A DNA stretch of 63,594 nt, the filler included, from Klebsormidium nitens (taxonomy: Eukaryota > Plantae > Klebsormidiophyceae), in NCBI GenBank assembly GCA_000708835.1. It is 6 parts of 6 records of this genome, joined end to end, with 100 filler letters (N's around TTAATTAATTAA, not from the genome) between each part and the next. Parts side by side here need not be neighbours in the genome. Positions count along the whole stretch, not along the records: positions 1 to 16,085 come from DF237101.1; 5 more parts are not named here. One strand, written 5' to 3'. Positions 1-16,085 of this stretch are shown piece after piece (position 1 is the first letter of the stretch; each line of letters starts with the position of its first letter). Made by a program: the position numbers and the translations under genes. Below the pieces are notes generated by a model that saw only the letters and a program-made list of their open reading frames with translations, did no database searches and had not been told where the DNA came from.

Positions 1-669
1 AAATGGTAGGAAAAAATCCGGGAAAATGCCGCCACTATACCACACTACGGTATAGTATATACGGTTCTAGTACGATAGCCGGAAGAAGTCTCAAAGTTCA
101 CATGCACTACGTGTCCATCAACTAACCATCTGTTGAACGGCATAAAATCTGCCAGCCACAAATCCCCCCTTTTCGGTGAGGCTCGCTGCCGCGCCGCACC
201 AAAGGTCGCCCCGAGAGCCACCGTACAGGTACGGTCAATAGCTAGCTCCAGACCTGCATGATCGCAGTCATGAGGCTTTGCCGTCCGAACAAGAATTGCC
301 GTCCGATCGCGAGCAGCGCGCGCAGATTCACTGAGTCGTCAATCAGTCCCCGAGCCTGTTTGCCTCGTGTCACTGGAATGGACACCTCACCGTCCGATTA
401 GCTTCAGGCGGTTGCAAGATATGAAAAAGGCGGGCCCTGACTCGGCTGTCTACCTTCTACTGACTACACTGACTAGCTCGGCAGGGATGGTGCAAGTTCT
501 TGGGAGCTTCCGTCTGAGTCGGCACTTTAGAGGCTTATAGCAGATTCTAGAAGAGAAAAGAAATCCACGTAAACAGTTTCAGAGCAAAGAGAGGTTCTTG
601 CACAAGACGTTCAACTGGTCTGGCTGCTCGCCGAACGTGGAATAATAACCAGATCACTCTCTTCCTTCA

Positions 670-2240
670 TTTATTCCAGACTTGAGCTCCTCAAGCTCAG
701 AGCTTCAGAAACCTCTCAGTTTTTGGCAAACATGGCTTGATCAGCGCCTTCAAGCCCGTGTACATGTCGCCCATGCCTGCCTGGCGCGCTGGCAGCAATT
801 TCAGGCTGTAAATACTGTCTTGTTGAGAGCCGCAGACCTTGTGCTTACAAGAGCTGATGTTGAGGTCAGCCATTGGCTGCTAGCACAAGCACTTTGCAGC
901 AACTTCCAGGAGAGCTTCCGTGACCTCTGACCTGCACCTCGTTTGAAAGAGGTGAGTGCGCTTCTTTGCACGAGTTCCGATCATGGTCAAGGTCTTTGAA
1001 CCACACGCGCCAAACGGGGTCCAAGCTATTCTGGATTCTATCAACCCTAGCTGGCTGGGTCAACCTTGACTGGCCGCACACATGTTGAGCTAGCCAGCAG
1101 GTATAGGTCTGAGCTTGGGAGATGCCCGGGAGATGTTTGGAGCTGGTGTGGATCACTGGTTCTCTGCGTTGCCAGTGGTCTGTATCTAGATTTGCCCAAT
1201 GCTGCAAGGGATGATGCATGTGAGTGTTGGGTTCGAAAATGGCAACAGAACATGCACTGCACATCATTGCTGATCTGACGTGCTTCTCAGCGCACACTTT
1301 TTCTTAAACGTCTGTGATGACGATTTTCAAAAGACCTAGAGGCCCTGCTAGTTTCTCAGTGCGCCTGCCATTTCCGGTTGCTCACCTCTGATGAAGTGAA
1401 CACTATAGGTGTCTAAGCTGGCCTGCCAGCATGCAAGCATCGACGATGCATGTCCTTCTATCTCGCTCATGCTTGGTGTTAACATGTATCTTCCTTATTC
1501 AACTCTTATTGGTTGGCAGACCCTTCTGAACTCACCTTGCAGTGTGCTTCTTGCAAGTTCATGTGCTGGACCTCATTGAATGCTCAGAGGCTTTCGAACT
1601 TTTTGTGCAAATTTCGCCGGCATACAAGGCCAAAGCCGTCATTGGTGGACTCAACAACGAGAACGGTTCTTGTGAGTAGCTAAAGCACTCTTCCTGGTAG
1701 CCTAGAGTTTCAGGTAGGGTCTGAACAAGTCATAGTACATGCAGCTCATCTGTCCACGTTGTCTTCATTGTCAAGATCTGGCCTCTAAGTAATCTGATAA
1801 GTGACCAGATGAGTGACCAGTTATCCACTCAAAGCACATAACTTAGAATAGAAGAGGCTTCTCATCAGATTGACAAAGTGCTTGAGCTGGCTGCTGATCA
1901 GCACTCCGAGCAAAGTCCAATCGTCCAGGCTGTCCAAGGCGTCCGAGCTGTGGGCTAACTCTTCTTGATTGTCTGGAATACTGACGTCAGCAATTGCTAG
2001 CTAGCTCAGTTCGAGTTTGGCTTGAAAAGATTCTGGACATACCAAGTGCTGACGTCATAATTCAATCCACCAAGCCCGCAAGCCCGCGACTCATGCGCAG
2101 CTGGGCGCTCAACCCTCACAAAGCAATTGTGGCACGTCGAATAAGCAATCATTGCCTATTAATTCCACTCTGCAGCAAACTCGTTTGTCCACCTCGAGCA
2201 AACTGAGTCGAGCTTTTTCGAGGAACCGAACATGACAGGG
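670..2240 (-). pseudogene. Heavily degenerated protein-coding remnant, unknown function
   Basis: Minus-strand frames give protein-like text broken by isolated stops (e.g. FLEKARLSLLEVDKRV..., IPDNQEELAHSSDALDSLDDWTLLGVLISSQLKHFVNLMRSLF, VTEALLEVAAKCLC*QPMADLN). No family recognised; boundaries approximate. Confidence 0.3.
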
Positions 2241-3857
2241 CGCCTCACGTAAGCGTCACTGTTTAATGTATGCAGCAATACTCTTGACAATCAGTGGTAG
2301 CGTCAAGCGGCCACCCGGGGTCCGCTTCATTGATCGGAGTGGACAGCGCAAGTCCAGCCTCAGCCTCGGCCCCACCTTCGGCTGCAAATGCCCTCGAGTG
2401 ATAGAACGACTATGGACAGCGGAGAAGGAGACTTGAGAACGGAGGTGAGCCAATACTCTAATCTGCGAGGCTGCGTGCAAGCTGTTTCGAATTGGCGATG
2501 CGAGTGGCAACTCAGAATCTCTGAACTGACATTGTTAGTAGCTGTTGGAAGTTGCTTACAAGCTGTGTGCGCGCAAGGTGCAGGATTCATGTGGGCAAGA
2601 TATAAGGCACCTGAATACACCAACAGTAGAGAGCTTAGGCAGGGTTTCAAACCCCGGCGGAACAGGCTGCAGCAAGGGCACTAGCTGGCTGCCGTTTGGC
2701 ATCCGATCAGATTGTTGATTGTGAGCAGATTTTTCCAAGTCTTTAAGACAGTCTGATCAGATCTGACGTTGGTTGCGTGCAACTCTGACTTACGAATCAA
2801 CATTTTGGCCGCTAAGCTGGTTGTGATCAATATTCGAAAGGCAATTGGGCGCGCATCAGATTCTCGATGAATGTCCCACTGGTTGAAGGCTTTTTCAATC
2901 CACCTGGACAGGGAGATTTTGCAGTCTGGAGCATACTGTATTGCAACCCTCTGGACTCCGTTTTTCCGAGAGGATTTTATAGTTGGCTTGCGAAAAGTAC
3001 AATCCAAAGCGTATCAACGCGTAGCAGACTGTTTTCAGACGAGACAGAGCTTCTAAAACCCCGGACTGGAAGTAGGGCCGAAGTGCATTGCCACGGTGGT
3101 CCGCGAAAGAGACTTCTAATCTTTCAGAAGAAACTTTTATGCACACTCAGGCGTTCATCTTGATCGATTGTGTCTTCTCTCTTTTCTATCAGGAGAATGG
3201 CAATACGAGCATTGAAGCAGACTCCGACGGAGAGGACATAGAGGACGTGGAGTTCAATCGCGAGGAAGAGTCTTCCGACGAGGAGACCTCGCAAGACCGC
3301 CGGTTTCTGGATGATTCATCGCAACCTCCCATTGCCCCGGTCTCAGAATACGCTCGGACGGACGCGGAGCTTGGGCAATCGGACACGGAGTCGCAGGTTC
3401 GATTCCAGGGGGGGCGCAAGCGCACCAAACGCGTAGATGACAGCGATGAGAGCGCAGAGCCCCCGCCCTTCAGGACAGGCCGTCGTAGAGTCACGATGCC
3501 GTCCGACTCGTCATCCTCGTCTGACGAGGGCGTGCAAGCGGCAGGTGAAGCCACTGAGTCGAGCCCTGAGGTCAGAGACCAGTCTGCCACGTCGAGCGAG
3601 TGGGGCGACCGTCCTGATTACGACGATCCTACGTGGGACTGGGACGATGAGGGTGATTCTGAGGAGCTGCGCGAGTTCTTTGGGGTCTGCCGCATCGATC
3701 TCGGGTTCGAGCGCGATTGGACGGAGTTGGAACAGGTACGCCCGCTCTCTGCAATTGAAAGTTTTGCTTGCTATATCTGAAAGTTGTTCAAGCTGTACCT
3801 TTTAGCGCTCCCTTTCAAGAGTGTAGACCCGGAATCATCAACCGACCGCAAACAGGT

Positions 3858-4271
3858 TGTCTAAGTGTCCAAGGTTTTGCCAAAGTTTTCTGGGGGGACT
3901 TTTTGCTGACGTCATCGCACCAGTTTCTCGACGACACGTCAACAAAGTCTGAACAATGAGACAATTCAGATACCCGCCTCAGTTTCTGATGCTCCCGTCA
4001 CTTTCTTCAGAAGACAACCTAGGCTCGATACACTGTCCACATGTCCAAGGTTTTACCAAAGTTTTTGGGGGAATTTTCTGCTGACGTCATCGCCCCAGTT
4101 CCTAGACGACTCTTCTACAGAGTCCGGCCAACCGGACGGTCCATAATCTGCTGAAAGCTTTGGCGTTCCTGTGCTTTCGACACTTCCCTTGAGAGACAAG
4201 GCTCGATACAAGTGTGTCCACGTGTCCAAGCTTTTGCCAAACTTTTCTGGTGGGAACGTCTGCTGACGTCA
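3858..4271 (+). repeat. Three degenerate copies of the ~81-bp TGTCCAAGTGTCCAAGG...TGACGTCA repeat in intron 2 of the primase-helicase
   Basis: TGTC(C/T)A..TGTCCAAG heads at 3858, 4034 and 4215; TGACGTCA at 3907, 4082 and 4264. Confidence 0.85.
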
Positions 4272-6456
4272 CCTTGTCTTCCGATGAGGCACATGCTTGA
4301 GTGCAAGAACTCGGCTTGATAAGGGTAGGCTGATCTAAAATCCTTATGTTTCCTTTGCAGGGACCGAGCCCGGCTGTTGAGGCCCCTATATCGACGATCG
4401 ACCCCGTCCTGGCCGCCGCTCATCATTTCCACAGCCTCGGCGTTGTGACCGTCACCCACGACCTCTTCGTGAAGAAGTTTTCAAACGGTCAAGTCCGGAA
4501 GCAGCCATGCAATTGGGCCTCTGACAAGTCTTGGAAGGAGGCAAACCTCGGCAACTGCCTCCAAGAGTTCGCCAAGCCTGGGCGCAACTCCATCGCCATC
4601 GTCATGGAGCAGTCTGACATCTATGCGCTCGACGTGGACGTCAAGGACGGGGGCTTTGAGGCGCTGGAACGAATGGTCACGGAGAACGACGTTTTTCCGG
4701 ACGACACGCCCCACGTAATCACCGGCAACGGGGGGCTGCACCTTCTCTTTTTCTTGTCTAAATTTGAGGAGGCTGGCCTGCTGAACTCCAGCAACGGGGC
4801 CAGAATTCCGTACTCGGGCGAAGCGGTGGGCATCGACGTACGTGGTAGGGGCGGAATGCTGTACACCGCTCCCAGCAGCTACAAGGGCCTTGATGGCACG
4901 CGTCGGAGCTACGAGTGGAAGGAGGAGATTCTGCCCGACCGCTCTAATCTTCGGGCCGTTCCAGACTGGCTCATCCGCATCTTGAACGGCAGCGGCGAAG
5001 CGCCAAGCGGACGTGGGCGGATGGCTCGGGATGGGGATGGGGCCCGGTACGTGTGACTTGATGCTTTTTTCATTCTGCGTCAGACGGATGTTTGATACGA
5101 GAAATTGATTGATTCGGCATGTGGTTTTAGTTGGTAGAGCTGACTGAGCATGTCCTAGTTGTCCATGCTTCAGCGCACCTTTTTGGTGTCTTGAAGAAGT
5201 GACGTCACCAAATTAGGCGATTGAAAAGCATCATTTATCTCACCTCTCCACGCTTCTATAGATTTGGGAGGGTTAGCAAGACCGTTGAAATGTTGTTCGA
5301 GCCGCTGGAAATATCTCATTGATTGTTGCAGTCCTCTGCACCCGCCTCCACTTGCAGGGTATCAATCGATGATGGCCACTAGACCTTGTGAACTGGCTAC
5401 CAGTGGCGCACATGCCACGCTCCTCTGATTGGAAATTCGGGTCCGTATGATGGGTTTCAAGCGCACTGCCCGATCTGGCTTCTGCCAAAGACTCGATGTC
5501 TCTCGCTCTTTGTTCACAAAGTCTACTTCTGATCCGTTCTTTTAAGGTGCTAGCAACTACAATCGAGTTTTCCGGGATTCTGACAACAAAGCGCCTTGCT
5601 TTTATGCAGTGAGCCGCAGGGTGTACCGTTTGGACCTCCTCGTCCGATCGAAGACCCTCAGCTGGCTCCCCCAGCAGCAGTCCTGGAGCGCGTCAAAGCC
5701 TGTGTGGCTTCCACTGGCGACACCGCCTCCCGGTTCGATCGCCTCAAGATGGGCGACAGCGGGCCAATCTACGTCTTTCGAGTGGCTGGGCCCCGACGCT
5801 GCCCGTACGGCAATCACCACGACGGTTCCAACAACTTCTCCGTGCTCGTGCGCAAGAGAGACGTGCTCTATTGCTGCAACAGCTCGGAGTGCCAGGGGGT
5901 ACGACCCTTGCTCAAGATCGGAGAGCTCACGCGCTCGGAGGCGGTGGGTGGAGGCGAGATTCGGGCTTTTAGTGCTGCCGACGCCAGCGCGATCAACGGC
6001 CTGCACAAGAGATTCGTGGACGCCTGGGCCTTCAAGGGAGACGTAGGCGGCAGCAAGATCGTCGCTGAGATGTACGCAAGCTGCAGCAGGTGAGAATTCT
6101 ACGAGATCTTGCATGAAAAGTCACTTTGGATCTTTCTGATCGTCGACGGCTCTTTCTGGACACTTGGACAGTATGCGGCAGCCTTGGATCGATACTCTGG
6201 TACTGCTCTGTTAGCGGTGAAGTGTGTTCTTGGCTGCTTGAAGCATTCACACTTAGCCAAGGGGCTTGGGGAGCCTCTGCAATAATGTCTAGGGTTGCGA
6301 GAATTGTTCAGCAGAGGGTGCGAGCAGCTGACATTATCATGATTCATCATCCCGTCTTGGCGTCTTTGTCTAGGTGTCCAAAGTTAGATTCTAGCAATCC
6401 TCAGATCTGCTTGGACACATAGGCTGCCATTCGAGAAGCTTCCATCTTAGCCGGTG

Positions 6457-6600
6457 TGTCCAAGTGTCCAAGGTCTACCACGAACTTTTTCGCGACCATC
6501 GATTGCCGACGTCATCAGATTGGAGCCAGTCTCGGTGTGTCTAGCTGTCCAGAGTCTGTGACAAACTTTCCGTGGCCGCCGAGTGCAGGTCTACGTCATC
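6457..6600 (+). repeat. Two tandem degenerate ~81-bp units of the same family in intron 4
   Basis: TGTCCAAGTGTCCAAGGT at 6457 followed by cGACGTCATC; second decayed unit from ~6538. Confidence 0.75.
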
Positions 6601-8584
6601 ATTGTGCTTTGCTCTGCTGGAAACACTTATGGCCAATCTGAACCGTTTGGACACTGGAGAACGCGAAAGAAATAGACCTTTTACGAACCCTGGTCGAGGC
6701 TCGTGTGAATCAAGATCTCGCTTATGTCAGCACTTAGATCGTTCATTTGCCCTTCTGCAGGCTGCGTTTTGATGGAGAAAGCTGGTGGTATTGAAATGGG
6801 AGGCGCTTCGTACGCTACAAGAAGAGCGTCTTCTATGTGAAGAGCGTGCTTATCAATCAGCTCAGGACTGTCTATGCGCGAGTGAGGGACGAGTGGAAGG
6901 TATCTATCGAGAGAACCACTGTCGAGAAGGAGCAAGAGGCGTTAATGGAGCAGCTTAAGCGCCTGCGCACCTACACAACAGCCGAGAGATCAGCAGTACG
7001 CTGGACCTCCTCCGCGGGGAGTTGGTCGATTTCGACTTTGCTCAGCAGCTGGATGCAGATCCAGACATCTTGAACGTGAAGAATGGAGTGCTCCTTCTGA
7101 GGACCGGCGAGCTCGATGTGCACCGGCCCCAGTACATGTGCTCCAAGATTGCGGAGACGGACTTCATGGTAAGCTTCCTATGCTGATTCAAGGAAAACTG
7201 AGCAACTTGCTTCATTGACTAGCTGACACGTTACGAGAGCTGGCGGACTGTTCATGGAAGTTGCACCAGTATGAATCTATTCAGTTCTAGGTTCACTTGA
7301 TCTCAACATCGAGAACTGTGCTTTTTCACTGTCGGAGACGTCGGATCTGACAGTGTAGCAAAGGACTGAATCTATCGGTGGCCCTGCATATCGCCCCCCT
7401 GCCGATTGACACATTGGTCGCATCCTTGCCAGAGGGTTCTACAAGTCAGTTTCGAGCTTTAAGCCACAAGGAAAACTTCTGCTCCTCTTCGGTGGGACCG
7501 CTTCAACACTCACCCATTGCTAATACCTCAACCTGATCTTGTTCCTTGATCATTCTGCAGGAAATGGAAAGGGTGCCCTGAAGGAGATGCCGCAGGCCGT
7601 GATCGGTGATTACTACGGCACTATGTCTAAGGACGCGGTCGTCACGGCTCCTGGCCAAAAGGCCTCCTCTAAGAACGCGCCTACAAACCACATCTACGAG
7701 CCGATGGGCGTGCCGCTTGCCGTCACTGACGAGACGGCGGAGAAGGAGCAGGTGGACCTGGATCTCGTCCTGGCGATGACAGGGGGCGGCACAATAGAAG
7801 CGCGGTGCCTCTACTCCAACAACGTCGAGTTCGCCATCACGCACACACCGTTCGTGCAGACAAACTACCCTCCTGCAGTCTCTGCAACAGCGATCAAGGG
7901 CAACGTCGTGCGCCGAGTGCGAGCGATCCCGTTTTCCAGCACATACGTCGGTGCAAACGCTTTCGACCCCACAAACGCAACCCACCGCCTGAGAGACGAC
8001 CACTTGAAGGAACGCATGAAGGAAGAGGAGTCGCGTCGGCAGATTCTTTCTTGGTTAGCTCGCGGCTCGGAGGAGTGGTACGCGAGTGCAGACGGCCTTG
8101 GTTCCCCACCATAGGCCGTACAGGATGCAACGGACGAGTACCTGCGGGAGGCGGACAAACTCCAGTTGTTCATCGACCAACATTGCGAGGTCGGAGAAGG
8201 ATTGTCGACACTGCAGGCTGCGTTCGCAGCCTGCTATGGGCAGTTCTCCTCCGAGAGGATCTCCTATGAAGAGTTGAAGAAAAGGATGGATACGAAGGGA
8301 TTCAAGAGGGCCAAGAACAATGATTCGCCACGGCAGTTTTACTATCCGGGAATAAGGTGCTCTTACACTACTTGATACGGTTCGTTGCTTGCATAGCATA
8401 ACAAACATGGTAATGACAAAGTGACTGCAATTCATACGTCCGACGAGCTCCACATCATTTTGATTAAATTGAAACGGATCTGGTGCATGCTCGTCGGATC
8501 TATAATCTGCTCTTGTCGAATTTAGTGTGTGTGTTGACAGTACTTGTATTTTCAAGGCTTAACAACCACGATTGCATTTAACGA

Positions 8585-8702
8585 TTTCCATGTGATGATG
8601 TTATCAACAAATGTGTTGGTCGAAAGTTTTGCTTGGATCGATGGATGACGTCAGCAATGAGCGACCGCAAAAAGTTGGTGCCAGACCTTGGACACTTGGA
8701 CA
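8585..8702 (-). repeat. Repeat-family unit plus flank; direct repeat of 13688-13794
   Basis: TTTCCAT.TGATGATGTTATCAACAAATGTGTT...TGACGTCAGCAA..GCGACCGCAAAAAGTTGGTGCCAGACCTTGGACACTTGGACA is present at both sites. Confidence 0.85.
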
Positions 8703-8782
8703 CGGCGGCGAGACATGCATGGCGGCGAGATACGCCCGCGCCGTTGCTGTTGCTCATTGAGGTCGTCTCTTGACTTTTGCAG

Positions 8783-8952
8783 TTAGTGCGCGGAAGGAGG
8801 CGGAGTTACAGAAAGCGCTGCAAGAAGCAGGGCTGAACTTGATAACAGGAACGTCGCCGCTAGCACGCTACAATCCTCCGTTCATCCCAGACTTCCTCAG
8901 GACGAACGAAGTTTTCCTCCCTGTCGAGTACGGGCTTCTTGTCCAGCCGTGA
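8783..8952 (+). pseudogene. Orphan terminal-exon-like ORF
   Basis: TTTTGCAG acceptor followed by VSARKEAELQKALQEAGLNLITG...PVEYGLLVQP*; no upstream exon identified. Confidence 0.3.
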
Positions 8953-9239
8953 TTAGCATTAGCATTTCTATCAGGGAGCGAACGAGGTAAAGGATGCGCT
9001 TCATAGATCGGCGTACGTGATTTGAGTGGCTGGCCGCATCTTCAAGGGAGTTGATCGGGCAGAACTGCCGCCTGTTGCCTCCTTCAACAGCATCGGCTAT
9101 GTTGGAAGCTTTTGCGATCGACCTGTGCTCACGTTTACTTACAGGGTGCAAGTGCAGATTGTGTAAATAGCTTCTGGCCACGAGTCTAGATTTTGTCGAT
9201 ACATTGGCTGGCCGAGTAAACAGATTGCTCTTCCTGCAG

Positions 9240-10158
9240 AGATGGTGTACGACTCTTCTGATGTTGACTGACAGGGTCCACTCGCTCATTCGCGTTCGAT
9301 CTTATCAGCTGTGCACACGATCTGTCGGTATACGTTGTATGAACTTGAAGTGGTCGACTCCTTTGCAAGACAACCCTTTTGTCTGGCTCATGCGATACAT
9401 TGATCCTTTGAAGGATCCGGATCATCGTACGTCAGCCAGTGCACAAGCAACTGGCATGCATGAATATGGTCTACTTGTCTCGCGAGCTAGGGCAATATAT
9501 GTTCTTTCCAGTGGCATCATGCGTACGTCTTCCAGGTTGGAAACTCAGACGGCGGCTGATTGCATGCATGAAGAGTGGCGACGATTGTTCGAAAGCCGAG
9601 GAAACTCGCTCGTGCGCCAGCTAAATGCAATATACATGAGCGCTCGCACATGTTTTGCAATGTTGTATACACCAACTTGTGTCGAGATTTGTACGCTCCA
9701 CTTGGGCCCAAGCTTTCCTCCATCAAGTTCCACCTCTTTAAGGCCAACAAAGTGCTCGAGCAGCCATTGATGCTCCCATGTAAAGTTGATCCAGACTGGT
9801 CCTATCAATATGCGGATGTAAATGTCCAGAAGCAGCATCCGTGGCAGTCTCAAGCTGATCTCTTAGCAATGTCCAGTAGGACTGACTTTTGCTCCATTGG
9901 ATCGGAGCAACTGGCTCGAGCTCTGACATGTCTATCATCGTATACTTTGCAGATCTATGTCCCTTGCATCACTCAGGTTTCAAACTGTTGCCCGTGTTTC
10001 CGGATGCCGAACTCGAGTTCTCAGCGGCCTGCACAGCAGACGGATGTTTAAGAAAACCGCTGCTTGGGAGGATGAGTGCAGATCGCAAAAAAGGACGCAT
10101 GTTGGCCATATTGTTCATAAAAGGGACTCGATTACCAAAGCGAATCCCAGACTTTTAG
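9240..10158 (+). pseudogene. Degenerate gene of unknown function, convergent with the 308-aa ORF
   Basis: Protein-like overlapping frames (e.g. CNIHERSHMFCNVVYTNLCRDLYAPLG; DLCPLHHSGFKLLPVFPDAELEFSAACTADGC...RIPDF*) with acceptor-like sites; stop at 10158. Confidence 0.3.
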
Positions 10159-10160
10159 TC

Positions 10161-11087
10161 CTACGACCAAGATAGATAAGTGTAAATGAAAAAAATTGAC
10201 TGGACTGGGGACGTACTTGCGGACACCATGATCCGTCTTAGATAGTCCACAAAGGACCGCCAGGCGTTGGTTCTTGAAGGATCTATGAAGAGCTTTTGGA
10301 CAGTGGCCCAGGGGCGCCTGGTCAGCAACCTGGCCTGGTTAGTCGTGCTGTGAAAAATTGCATTTCGGAGTGCCCTAAGGTAGATCCGGATCAAGATCTC
10401 TTGATCCCCATCGGACAGCGGTTGGTTGTTCTGCAACATCCTCGTCAAGGTCTGGAGAGCCAACTTGGCCACGGGAGTTCCATTGCGGGAATAGCGGTTG
10501 GCAGGGTGCAGAAAAGCTGCCGCGAGCTTCTTGGCCAGGAGCTCTTCATTAGTGTCAGACGCATTATATAAGAGACTCACAGCCTTATTCGCCATGCTCG
10601 CTTGCATGATCTGCTCTACAATCTGAAGTCCTTGCAGATAAGATACAGGCGCTGCCCCAGCAGCTTCCTCCCAAAACGCTGACATGCGCAGATCTCTAGA
10701 AAGGGTCCACTTGAAGCGTGAGTCGACCACCATCTCTTCATAGGTTCCCCCCAGTGCGTACATATCGAACAGATCGATGAGCAGACTAGCATCTTCCTTC
10801 CACTTATTAGTCATTCCCTGCATTTCAAATCTTGCATAAGCACTAAATGCTCTTCCTTTGGGTGAAGCTTTCATGATTACAGCCACACTGGGTTGATCAA
10901 CCAGACAATCCATCACCAAGAAAAGAAAGGACTGAAGAACGTCATATTGCGAGTCAAGCACACGCACCTTTGGGTCAAAGTCCCCCAAGAAATGGAAGAG
11001 GGATCCAAGGAAGGAGAGCGGGGAAGGGTCAGCCTGCAGCGAGACAAGACTGTCAGTGAATTCGACGGATCTTCTCTCTTCATACAA
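10161..11087 (-). CDS. 308-aa open, helical-looking ORF; probable 3' part of a larger decayed gene extending to ~12750
   Basis: Long open frame in otherwise stop-rich DNA; upstream minus-strand protein-like fragments with stops at 11640-12733. No family recognised. Confidence 0.55.
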   Translation of the reverse strand: MYEERRSVEFTDSLVSLQADPSPLSFLGSLFHFLGDFDPKVRVLDSQYDVLQSFLFLVMDCLVDQPSVAVIMKASPKGRAFSAYARFEMQGMTNKWKEDASLLIDLFDMYALGGTYEEMVVDSRFKWTLSRDLRMSAFWEEAAGAAPVSYLQGLQIVEQIMQASMANKAVSLLYNASDTNEELLAKKLAAAFLHPANRYSRNGTPVAKLALQTLTRMLQNNQPLSDGDQEILIRIYLRALRNAIFHSTTNQARLLTRRPWATVQKLFIDPSRTNAWRSFVDYLRRIMVSASTSPVQSIFFIYTYLSWS

Positions 11088-13539
11088 GTAATCAATGATC
11101 GATCATCATTCAAGACTTCAAAGAGACAGCAACAGACGGCAGAAGCTCACCTCTGGAAGTTTCAGCATGGGCGTGGCGACGATTGCCAAGAGGATTGCGA
11201 GCCCGAAGATGGCTCTCTTGGACAAGAAGCTCCTCTGCATAACATAGATCCAGATCAGATTGAGAAAGAGAATATAGGCCTTAGAGCAAGCAAGGCAGCA
11301 TATTACTGTCAATCTGCATGCAAAGAGATGCAGACATTCTCTAAGAGCAAGCAAGGCAGCATATTACTATCAACCTGCATGCAAAGAGATGTAAAGAAAC
11401 ATACGGTCAATCTTTCCCTCCAGACTGTAGGAGCAGTTTCTCACGGAGTGTCCTCCCTAGAGAAGAAATCCCGTTCGTGCTTAGAGAGGAGGATGTGAAG
11501 GTCACAGACTACAACAAGCGTGGTGTTCTCTGGGATAAGCAGTGCTGCTAGGTAATCATGAATCCCATCGGTGTCGCACGTGTCTGCCCCTCGGGTCACA
11601 TAGTCGCGGTGCGCCTATGAAGGAGACAATTGCAGAGCTTAGATCTACACAACTCAGCAGCGCAGATGGCAGCGTTGAAGCGACTTTCAGATGTTCATCC
11701 TGCTCATTGAACTACAAATTCCTGGAAAGTTCATCCATCTTGCTTACATCTGAGCTGCTGCAGACATGCCTACCTTCATGCAAGACGAAGCGAGTGCTTC
11801 TGGGGGTACTCCAAGGAAGGCGGCAGCATCATGAAGAAGCCCCGCCACTTCTGAGTTGCGCAAAGAATCAACGACCTGGGGGTTTGGATCAATGTGTCAA
11901 CCACCACATAGCAGATGGGTGACATAGTTCTCAAACAAGTGGATACATACCAATGTTTTCAGCCCTTGCAGCATGATGGTGTCCAATCTACACCTCCCAT
12001 TCTGATTCTTACCTGCAGCTTCTGTTCCTGAATCTTTGTCAGCTCCTCATCCCAGAAGGACTCTGCCTGAGGGGAAAAGCACAAACATGAAGGTGTCAGT
12101 TATCTCAAGCTGATCCGCCACTTGCAACATGAGGCTTGCATAGCTTGCCAGTGTCAGTATCCCTAGATAGATCAACTCTGAATCCTAAACGCTACACTTC
12201 TGAGGTCGACCATCCTCGCAGGATTTAGCTGACCACTTTGTCACGAGGTGCAATGAACTCACTTGAGAGCTGGGTCCCGATGTGCTGCAGCAGGTCACAG
12301 GTCTCTTCTGCGCTTCGCTCGTACTCCTCTCTTAAGAGTAACTGCACACGGGATTGTTGCAACCTGATCAAACCTCACCAGCGCTTTCTTCAGCAATACC
12401 TTGACAAGCATCAACGGGCACTCAACTCAGGAAAACGCAAGGCATCGAGACTCGTCTGTCAACCACCTCCCCAACAAAAAGGCGCCTTGTAAGTTGGAAA
12501 AAGGCTCCTGAATGGATACTCTTCGAGCAGAGGAAAAGAAACTGCTTCTCCAATTTGCCAGCATTAGCGGGGTTCCATACGTCTGAGTAGCGATGTGAGG
12601 TTTGGCCGTTCCGCCGCCTGTCACCGATGTCCTGGGGAAGAGTGGAGGACTCTGAGACATTCCTGCTCTTGACTTCAAAGAACCTCTCCTGCAAAAGGCT
12701 GCTCCAGAATTTGTGCTCTTGCCAAAGAGGCATGACCTAGAAGCCATCTTCTCGAGTGTCCAGCGCTGATCTACAGGTTGGTGTGTTCTACCGTCTGTTC
12801 CTCTCTACCAGCAGACTACAATTCTGCGGGAGGAAAGGATGTGAGTTTGGGGTCTGCTATTGCCATTTCAGCTTGTGCCTTCCCGTCTGGCATGCACAGG
12901 CGGCCATTGAGGAACGGAGGCCTAAGCTGGACGATGCTACAAATCAGATACTAATACTACTCTCAATTCTAAGCATCTGTCTGTCTTGCGACCTAGAGAG
13001 ACCTGGTTGATGATAAGGAATGCTTCTCCCAAGACAGAAGGTCTGAGGAATGCTGGACAATCTCCTCTGCAGCAATAACTCAAAGGAGGCCTCCCCTTTC
13101 CTCAAGTGTCATCACGTTCAGCAGGGTAGAAGCAAGCAGCTAGAGCAGAGGCAAAGGCTACATCAAACTTCAAAGCGCACACCGTCGTCGGTCAGCAAGC
13201 CAAGGGGAGTTCGGCACAAACTTCTGGCCGATTACGGGGGGACATGTCAGCCCCCCCACTGGCCCAAATGGTTGCATTTAGACCGATCGGTCGAAAGGCG
13301 GTCGACACGCCGGGGCTCTAGCCAATGACGGGTCTGTCATCTCCCGACCTCAGGAGATCCGACCTATGCCATCCCGGTGAATAGCAGATGCCATTTCTCC
13401 CCTACACGTTCCTGCGATGCCATATAATATCCTAGGTAGTCTGCCGGGAGTCTGCCTGATATAGAGGTTTGAGACCTCGCGGTGAGATTGCCAATTTTCA
13501 CCTGACCAGTTGGACCAACACCAATTTACGTCGATATTG

Positions 13540-13794
13540 GGCGGCGAGACAGGCCCGCGCTCTGATGACGTCAGCAATGAGCGACCGCAGAAAGTTGGTG
13601 CCAGACCTTGGACACTTGGACATGGCGGCGAGACAGGCCCGCGCCCTGATGACGTCACCAATGAGCGACCGCAAATATCTTCTGGAGTTTCCATTTGATG
13701 ATGTTATCAACAAATGTGTTAGATCGAAAGTTTTGCTTGACGTCAGCAAATAGCGACCGCAAAAAGTTGGTGCCAGACCTTGGACACTTGGACA
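13540..13794 (-). repeat. Tandem ~84-bp units of the TGACGTCA/TGTCCAA family, reverse orientation
   Basis: TGACGTCA at 13566, 13650 and 13738; CCTTGGACACTTGGACA motifs. Confidence 0.9.
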
Positions 13795-13935
13795 ATTTCT
13801 GCACTCAACCAGGCACCGGCACATGCGACGAGAAAGATCGCTTGCAAGCATGCGTTGATGCACGGTCGATACACGGTCGATATCAATGCATGTAGCCACG
13901 GTCACAAGGCTATGTTCGCAGTGGCTCGAGCGTCT

Positions 13936-15210
13936 CTAGTTTGTATCTTGCGATACGTATCGCATGTGCGCCTTGGAGTTCTTAAACCTGCGCTCAAGAT
14001 GCTCCTCAATCCATCTCGTTCGGGATTCTTCTAGCTCTCGATTTGCGCGCTCTAGTCCCGCTTTGTATCCTTCAAACCCCTGAAGATATTTGCGGTACTC
14101 ATTGATGAATGCGCATTCTTCATTCATCCATGCCCTCCACGGCATGCCGCCAGACTTTTTGGCGATGAGGCCGGGTTTAAACCGCCTGTCGTTCAAAGGG
14201 CCAAAGAGCTCCGTAGCGTAGTGAGCCATTGTCTCATCTCGGTTTAAGCCGCCAACCGTGGAGCACGGAAAATGCTCGACGAATCGTTGGAGGGTCTTTG
14301 CTCTCGCCTCCTAGTGCAGAAAAGAAAATGATGATGCTGCAGTCGGGATGCGAGATACGTGCATCCTTGACTTGGCAACCAAAAAGATTGCCAGATGTAT
14401 GCATATTAATGAAAGTGTGCACGCCGTTGGTGAATGGAACGTCGCTGCTTATCTGCTCGGCCCCTTGCTGTGCACAATTGATGCTGCAGTCAATGAGAAT
14501 GGATGTACACGGATCGTTTTCCAATTTTCCAAAAAATTGAGTGATGCACAATAATTACTAGAAATGTACACGAATCTCTGTCCAATCTGTCCAAAATATT
14601 GAGTGGTGTACATCAATTACTAGAGAAGTATACGAATCTCTGTCCAATCTGTCCAAAATACTGAATGATGTACATCAATCAACAAACATGTACACGAATT
14701 TCTGTCCAAAGAGGAACATTGTTATGCCTATACAAAAATCGGTTGACTTGATGCTAGTATCACCCTCCGTTGCTAGGTATGACTTGCCCGTACCTCGACC
14801 TTGTCAGGGTGGAAGTGCAGCGACCGAGTCTTGTGGTGTAATACAATCTCGCCGCGATCGAACATCTCTCAAGCTTTGCTCGGAAGAAGCTCGGCATCCG
14901 CGATGAGCCACGACAGGGGCGATCGCACGTACTCTGGTGCCTTTGGCGTGGGTGGAGCGGAGAGGGCGTTGCGAGCCATGATGCGGTACCTCGCCATATG
15001 CCATGACCTAAAGACAGCGCGTTCTCCATCAAGAGTGCGTCGATACTTCGAAACCGCAGCGGTGTTACTCCGGCGCTTCAGCTGACGAGAAGCTTTCGGC
15101 TCCAAGCCGCGATATTTCGAGGGCGCACGATCGCTCGGAAACTTATAAGGCTCGCACCCCGGCTCGCACCCCATCCTCTTTGGATGACCTTCCAAGGCTT
15201 GCTTCGACAT
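13936..15210 (-). CDS. Predicted two-exon ~218-aa protein with a bZIP-like basic region and C-terminal coiled coil
   Basis: Exon 15210-14929 (ATG; donor GTGCGA, phase 0) joins exon 14310-13936 (acceptor TTTTCTTTTCTGCACTAG) in frame. Contains KRRSNTAAVSKYRR (N-x7-R). No internal stops. Confidence 0.6.
14563..14710 (+). repeat. ~62-bp tandem repeat (about 2.5 units) inside the predicted intron
   Basis: (A)TGTACACGAATCTCTGTCCAATCTGTCCAAAATA... repeated. Confidence 0.8.
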
Positions 15211-15899
15211 GAAGTTCTTGCCGCAAATCTCAGATCCATCTTCACAGTGCCGTTCAAGGCAAATGAAGCGTCCTCCGTCCCGCTTCCAAAGCTGTTACGA
15301 AGCCGTGATTGTTGATGCTGCGGCAACATGCGGTGGACTAACGGCATACATGATGAACGTTCAAATCGAGAATGATCGTAAAGAGGGTGCTCGACGAGCT
15401 CCAAACCGACTCAGCAGCAGTGACGTTCCTACATTAAACAACAAGGGCGCCTTTAAATAGATGACGTTCATGGAATGCAATTGTAAGTCTAGATCAAGAG
15501 AACAATAGGGTGATGCATGATTGCAGACTCCTCCATTGCTTTATAAAGCTCCACGGCCACGACGGCCTCTGCCTTGGGTTGATGAAATGAAACATTGTTT
15601 GGCAACTCCACATGCTTGCGATGGGATCGAGAACTCTGCTAGTCAATGGCATCTTGTCCACGAAAGGGACCGTCCGGATGGCGTGCCGCCATCTGCGATC
15701 TGCGATTGAAAATGCATACTATGATGCATATCATATGCGCATGAAAGTAAAGCGGCCAACAGCCCTGCCAGATCGGTCCAGATAAAAAGCGGACGCATTA
15801 CGACATGGTACATGATATGCTTTGGTTTGACTTTAAGAAGGAGACGAGACGATATGTCGATCTGTTCCTCGATTTCCCAAGCCGTCACGATTCACCCTG

Positions 15900-16085
15900 C
15901 GTCCAGATGTCCAAGGTTTGTGATCAACTTTTCGTGGTCGTCCATCGCTGACGTCATCAATGCCTGAGCCTCTCTCGGCGTGTCCAAGTGTCCAAGGTAC
16001 GTGATCAACTTTTTGTGGTCGTCCATCGCTGACGTCATCGATGCGTGGGCCGCTCTCGGCGTGTCCAAGTGTCCAAGGTCCGTGA
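15900..16085 (+). repeat. Well-conserved 81-bp tandem units of the TGACGTCA family running into the contig end
   Basis: TGACGTCA at 15949 and 16030 (period 81); third unit cut by the gap. Confidence 0.9.

Follow-up and report, generated by a model that had tools for sequence, protein, structure and literature searches.

We were interested whether a small gene in Klebsormidium nitens belongs to a self-replicating element, as a sequence-only reading of its surroundings had proposed. The gene lies in a stretch of DNA of 63,594 nucleotides, filler included (the window), on the part taken from DF237101.1 (positions 1 to 16,085). According to that proposal, a bZIP-like origin-binding protein reads TGACGTCA iterons and forms a replicon together with a Prim-Pol/D5 helicase. 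The analysis led us to prefer a different reading, to which we give a probability of roughly 0.55: the gene in the window is a decayed copy and a fixed part of an undescribed multi-copy mobile element, its protein is element-specific and probably DNA-binding, and the arrays beside it are constrained two-box cis-modules.

Searches were run exon by exon for the window copy, and natural spliced database proteins were used otherwise. Among 5.8 billion proteins the exon-2 piece found a single relative, Klebsormidium nitens KFL_008050050 (82% identical), whereas an exhaustive search with the exon-1 ORF led to 12 proteins from K. nitens, two JGI samples and ENA or Logan assemblies. A further search added KFL_001520100 (P0015), an annotated full-length member of 307 aa. 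The gene belongs to a small family whose members come from Klebsormidium nitens and a few environmental assemblies only; the related loci carry L numbers below. Two exons, spaced about 150-700 nt apart, were found in all eleven loci, and the donor of the shared intron, common to every relative, stands directly after the HPDKV(E/Q) codons. Unspliced gene calls all stop a few codons past HPDKV(E/Q), the next Val codon being the GT of the intron, and in the annotated K. nitens proteins this point is spliced to the second exon. Under the family-shared two-exon model the gene occupies the following span of the window:

13936 to 15351, minus strand: zinc-finger/basic-helix/HPD-motif gene, decayed copy, with the family-shared phase-0 intron inside

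Exon 1 corresponds to 14794-15351(-) and exon 2 to 13936-14310(-). The family reading frame opens 47 codons upstream of the ATG chosen in the sequence-only reading, an ATG that aligns with an internal residue. The spliced ORF proposed there, with a 14929/14310 junction, does have GT and AG dinucleotides at its ends, yet all relatives use a donor further 3'. The donor at 14929 is common to no relative, bypasses one stop and drops 45 conserved codons, and it was rejected. At the other end of the intron, the acceptor dinucleotide of the paralogue is lost in the window, and the acceptor proposed earlier, three bases on, preserves the frame. The gene had furthermore been described as looking intact. 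Under the shared model exon 1 contains two in-frame stops, besides one 12-nt in-frame insertion and zero frameshifts, so that the window copy is not intact; exon 2 is open. Compared to the intact K. nitens paralogue in L001, the two exons are 90.8% and 90.2% identical at the nucleotide level and the intron 82%, with dN/dS of 0.39 and 0.43 for the two exons, indicating that the family represents a real gene. A dN/dS of about 0.4 suggests purifying selection on it.

In the encoded protein a C2H2-like zinc finger is combined with a strongly conserved basic segment of two helices, with an HPD motif, within a segment that is split by the conserved intron, and with a helical C-terminal half. All invariant columns of alignments A2 and A3 (five in A3) fall within the basic segment of about 45 residues, which also reaches the highest pLDDT of the modelled protein. 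The peptide on which the bZIP proposal had been built was recovered in the ORF 14869-15210(-), at about the place given here:

15037 to 15087, minus strand: peptide RQLKRRSNTAAVSKYRR, opening helix of the basic two-helix segment, the most conserved one in the family, pLDDT 83-95

Ahead of this segment, five Cys/His columns are kept (C 11/11, H 11/11, C 12/12, H 12/13 and C 11/12). AlphaFold modelling of P0015 with A2 (mean pLDDT 69.5, pTM 0.46) predicted a hairpin-plus-helix finger, helices 81-100 and 103-125 at a pLDDT of about 90 and a long helical C-terminal half; the ligand columns of a C2H2 finger and its order of strands, then helix, are present, with strands and helix at pLDDT 75-89. 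Matches to zf-C2H2_6 were weak: eight of the 16 members gave one, the best at E 0.0019, and every score stayed under 25 bits and under the Pfam cut-off. A single C2H2 zinc finger plus a basic region is the make-up of DNA binders of the GAGA-factor type. The algal protein resembles these in its C2H2-like finger, the kept Cys/His columns and the adjoining conserved basic helices, but differs in that its finger matches stay below cut-offs and its basic part follows the finger; it is a candidate DNA binder.

Like bZIP proteins of the ATF/CREB class and EBV Zta, the algal protein has a conserved basic helix with an Arg eight residues after an Asn, and CRE palindromes nearby. The expectation that homologues conserve N-x7-R was borne out, as the Asn is invariant (17/17) and the residue at +8 is basic in 17/17 sequences (Arg in 16), and the spacing is thus conserved. 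Unlike bZIP proteins, however, the algal protein has no profile match, lacks leucine heptads and carries a zinc finger in front, and its motif is followed by a break in the helix and a Pro-rich linker. The profiles bZIP_1, bZIP_2 and bZIP_Maf gave zero matches at E<=10 with the window pieces, the L001 exons and 16 members, no bZIP was found in the PDB profile search, and neither EBV Zta nor any bZIP was ever returned by sequence or fold searches. A Gly occupies N+13 in 94% of the sequences, a Pro-rich stretch starts at N+35, and Leu reaches >=50% in two columns only, which are out of heptad register. In the AlphaFold models of P0015 and of an exon-1 product the helix breaks two residues past the Arg, and Foldseek searches with both models against PDB and BFVD gave no significant match. 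The second model, of the exon-1 product, showed the same helix break as the first, the confidence of the two being middling (pTM 0.46 and 0.31). A leucine zipper continuous with the basic helix was absent from the alignment and from the two models, and neither P0009 nor the A2 profile retrieved any PDB sequence below E 0.6. bZIP membership was ruled out on profile, zipper and fold.

The HPD tripeptide is conserved as well (H 13/14, P 14/14, D 14/14), and one member is named 'J domain-containing protein' in UniRef. A J domain was considered for the HPDK motif and this name, and was rejected without a DnaJ profile match (zero in 16 members) and without a J fold, the HPD region of P0015 being modelled at pLDDT <50 and helix II not being predicted. 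J-domain helpers are part of SF3-helicase replicons such as those of polyomavirus, in the large T antigen, and of papillomavirus, where host Hsp40 acts with E1/E2. The algal HPD tripeptide protein is likewise always encoded beside SF3-type primase-helicases, but it is a separate protein and not a helicase fusion, has no DnaJ profile and shows a low-confidence fold. Judged from sequence and models, the protein is an orphan with nucleic-acid-binder features, neither a bZIP nor a demonstrable J protein.

A Prim-Pol/D5 gene near the window gene, as proposed, could be confirmed, with Prim-Pol at 4346-5056(+) (E 2e-15) and D5/helicase homology to about 8366:

2394 to 8366, plus strand: D5-A primase-helicase region, Prim-Pol at 4346-5056, coding blocks in all three frames

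D5-A is interrupted by non-coding stretches; in the window it has at least two in-frame stops inside matched blocks, and relatives have introns there. When the window D5-A was compared by tblastn with the intact paralogue D5-B, D5-B residues 64-227, 306-437, 556-599 and 649-902 were covered; the window copy lies in pieces. The neighbour gene has the make-up of a Prim-Pol plus D5_N/SF3 helicase. D5-B itself forms one ORF of 925 aa in L007 and carries Prim-Pol, D5_N and DUF5906. Pfam searches with further window ORFs in the D5-A region gave no match, and Rfam and tRNA scans of the window piece found nothing. The linkage of homologues to D5 genes held throughout: the gene adjoins Prim-Pol/D5 genes in 10 of the 10 loci long enough to judge (window, L001, L002, L004, L005/6, L007, L008, L009, L012 and L013).

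The twelve exact TGACGTCA sites (CREs) were all found at exactly the positions reported before, against an expectation of 0.34 and never more than 3 in any of 200 shuffles. The repeat family of about 81 nt was found too, and 8 of 11 scorable CREs, together with the CRE at the edge, fall within its composite unit. This unit consists of a direct dyad, GTCCAAGTGTCCAAGG at 15982-15997, followed by TGACGTCA 48 nt on. In the window the repeats are distributed as follows:

15895 to 16085, plus strand: bipartite repeat array upstream of the gene, dyad with CRE 48 nt on, running off the end of the piece
13542 to 13810, minus strand: same bipartite repeat on the 3' side of the gene, in opposite orientation, collinear with L001 10132-10369
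8644 to 8718, minus strand: single unit of the same array, adjoining the D5-A 3' end and separated from the rest by extra DNA
3853 to 4271, plus strand: three bipartite repeat units with a period of about 176-181 nt, between D5-A coding blocks, equivalent to L001 15610-16027
6154 to 6619, no strand: dyad-bearing units with degenerate CRE halves, between D5-A coding blocks
1965 to 2060, no strand: two TGACGTCA 68 nt apart, without a dyad at the usual distance

In six loci, namely the window, L001, L002, L004, L007 and L010, the distance from the start of a GTCCAAG-type dyad to the CRE is 48-51 nt, with array periods of 81 to 112 nt there (113 nt in L012), and the unit columns outside dyad and CRE are no better than random. 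With a fixed dyad-to-CRE spacing and a drifting remainder, the units resemble protein-binding cis-elements under constraint. Neutral minisatellites, functionless products of slippage and gene conversion, could likewise show the within-array identity of 90-97% and the periods that differ across loci. However, boxes and spacing are kept between loci whose proteins share only about 45-70% identity, with everything else in the unit drifting, and the positions of the arrays relative to the genes are conserved, which makes this explanation highly improbable.

CRE arrays lie just upstream of the gene in seven loci. In L001, L004, L007, L012 and L013 they end some 150-660 nt before the start codon, their orientation relative to the gene is identical in every locus with an array, and further arrays occupy matching positions between the coding blocks of D5-A. 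Arrays of repeated sites thus adjoin a candidate initiator gene, which is the layout of an iteron origin. A very long array was seen in L010 (122-4051), 3.5 kb upstream of the member there; it comprises some 30 units, each of 103-104 nt, contains 25 exact CREs and switches orientation once. The expected linkage of homologues to the repeat held for the seven loci with upstream arrays, but not for L005/6, L008 and L009. These more distant copies retain gene, motif and D5 genes and have neither CRE nor dyad; in L005 unrelated tandem repeats are found at the array's place. The protein can therefore not depend on the boxes throughout the family. As these are three independent loci with the motif kept, zero TGACGTCA and zero dyad, they also weaken the idea that the N-x7-R motif reads the CRE. 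A comparison by eye of basic-helix residues with CRE presence covers few independent lineages, and in L002 the motif varies with the arrays still there.

The arrays might instead be promoter or enhancer modules for host factors only, such as plant-type bZIPs at the CRE, with a non-binding protein that acts through its HPD motif as an adaptor, a co-chaperone-like helicase partner. Their distance of 150-660 nt from the start codon and their fixed orientation relative to the gene fit such modules, and the HPD in 13/14 sequences, the UniRef name and the box-free copies that keep the protein fit such an adaptor. The missing DnaJ profile match and the poorly modelled HPD region do not, a zinc finger with invariant basic helices is typical of nucleic-acid binders, and the dyad half has no known host reader; we consider this explanation unlikely.

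That opposed arrays flank the gene was confirmed (13542-13627 versus 15976-16061, 78% complementary). Window and L001 run collinear, with an identity of 82-85%, except for two extra segments:

8703 to 13544, no strand: extra DNA of about 4.8 kb inside the array, absent from L001, holding a 308-aa ORF
15499 to 15855, no strand: 357 nt absent from L001, between the upstream array and the gene

The 308-aa ORF, 10161-11087(-), had no Pfam match, and the longer segment, which contains a 61-nt tandem duplication at 11280-11391, had no copy in the other loci. L001 for its part carries a 626-nt tandem duplication of 98% identity at 5145-6446, in the region homologous to a 374-aa gene. Relative to L002, L007 and L012, only the zinc-finger/basic gene is flipped in the window and L001; the array part by D5-A is still oriented as in the ancestor, and the part in front of the gene turned together with it. 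An inversion of the gene, one of whose breakpoints lay within the array, best explains the opposed arrays in the window and L001. As a single inversion accounts for them, a palindromic origin or terminal repeat is not needed, and the foldback or TIR reading of the inverted arrays was dropped.

The conserved intron contains a repeat of its own:

14503 to 14709, no strand: 62-nt tandem repeat, 3.4 copies, in the intron, where five TGTACA and GTCCAA-type half sites are clustered

At every locus examined, including those free of CRE arrays, the intron holds 2-7 TGTACA, compared to about 0.04 expected per 170-nt intron, and these mostly read GTGTACAT on the sense strand. The clusters in the introns of the other loci are located at:

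L001, 9241-9417
L002, 10346-10419
L003, 12579-12730
L004, 10578-10611
L005, 10604-10662
L007, 10630-10670
L008, 10575-10628
L010, 7993-8396
L012, 10609-10683

Similar TGTACA clusters were seen between D5-A coding blocks (L002 3129-3196, L007 4974-5051 and L012 3395-3496) and between two ORFs matching CxC4 and KDZ (L007 18744-18916).

In L002, L007 and L012, and in part elsewhere, the genes follow a conserved order: D5-A, array, zinc-finger/basic gene, the 374-aa gene, D5-B and a weakly KDZ-transposase-like gene. The last of these, which lies outside the window, is convergent and stands past D5-B; its adjacent ORFs match CxC4 and then KDZ, in this order, in both L007 and L002 (CxC4 E 0.0021 and 0.0044, KDZ E 0.0041 and 0.02, respectively; all below Pfam cut-offs). 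Precomputed tables held no Pfam family for the KDZ-like gene models. The gene was located at L007 17189-20599(-), L002 18645-20713(-) and L001 1-582, at the same place and convergent with D5-B. No locus extended to the ends of the element, and that all these genes would belong to one element is read from their conserved order. In L003 (699-12526) the annotation fuses the member to a DUF8368 part, only one CRE occurs in the locus, and the place of D5-A upstream is taken by a gene of 1693 aa with a Herpes_ori_bp-type helicase domain. In L005/L006, fragments of an LTR retrotransposon with RVT_1, Integrase_H2C2, rve and PHD matches were seen at 896-3770, some 6 kb ahead of the gene.

A transposase-like gene, a second element protein and arrays of short repeats, direct and inverted, are also combined in En/Spm (CACTA) elements, with TnpA and its repeated binding motifs, and in KDZ (Kyakuja-Dileera-Zisupton) elements, whereas the algal KDZ/CxC4 matches are weak (E 0.002-0.02) and the algal arrays are internal, not shown as subterminal. 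The weakly KDZ-transposase-like gene in the unit points at least as much to a transposon as to a replicon. For the replicon of the sequence-only reading, with its bZIP-like protein, speak the conserved N-x7-R, the enriched CRE arrays adjoining the gene in seven loci, the constant primase-helicase linkage and the one locus with a Herpes_ori_bp-type neighbour helicase. These have to be set against 16 members with no bZIP profile, the lack of a zipper and of a fold match, the helix break past the Arg, the Gly and the Pro-rich linker past the motif, a motif kept without CREs, the broken copy in the window and now the transposase-like gene, and we regard that replicon as very unlikely.

The primase-helicases raise the question of a viral origin, namely whether the unit is a piece of a polinton-like or giant-virus-like endogenous virus and not a transposon. 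The algal genes share with the D5/P4-type primase-helicases of giant viruses, polinton-like viruses and plasmids the Prim-Pol, D5_N and DUF5906 domains in the intact D5-B, and Prim-Pol in the window. Genes of this kind are hallmarks of such integrated viruses (PMC10120064), and phycodnavirus-like core genes have been reported in K. flaccidum/nitens (PMC5294986). Unlike these systems, however, the algal unit has two diverged paralogues, with arrays in the D5-A introns, and it lacks capsid genes: no capsid, packaging ATPase or protease family was found among the neighbours of the gene in about 20 kb of nine loci. Spliceosomal introns stand at conserved places, IMG/VR scans with D5-B and P0015 gave zero relatives, and the nearest D5-B relatives all come from Klebsormidium or the same samples, so that close relatives are confined to Klebsormidium-type DNA. 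A viral fragment is therefore distinctly unlikely.

Returning to the mobile element that we prefer, its arrays would be regulatory or recruitment sites. The CRE half would most simply be read by host bZIP factors and the dyad half by the element protein, for which the zinc-finger/basic protein is the best candidate; this protein may in addition couple the array sites to the neighbouring helicases. The analysis showed the family, its gene model, the decay, the linkage, the module architecture and the orientations; that the protein binds DNA, at which box, and whether it takes part in replication or transposition is what we infer here. Going further, the KDZ-like transposase, the two primase-helicases and the zinc-finger/basic protein with its J-like HPD, reading the arrays as origin-like or transposition sites, could make up a new self-synthesising transposon or episome, which we put forward as a speculative and unlikely extension. 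In the literature searched, no paper links Klebsormidium with such elements, nor KDZ names with primase.

The bZIP/CRE story thus does not hold, and the fixed spacing from dyad to CRE offers a clean case of a cis-module that is kept while the remainder of the repeat drifts. Eukaryotic mobile elements with their own replication proteins are few, comprising polintons, helitrons and some virus-transposon fusions. If the proposed element is real, it would add a new combination of two primase-helicases, a transposase-like gene, an orphan and probably DNA-binding protein and two-box arrays, in a streptophyte alga, a host lineage close to the origin of land plants.
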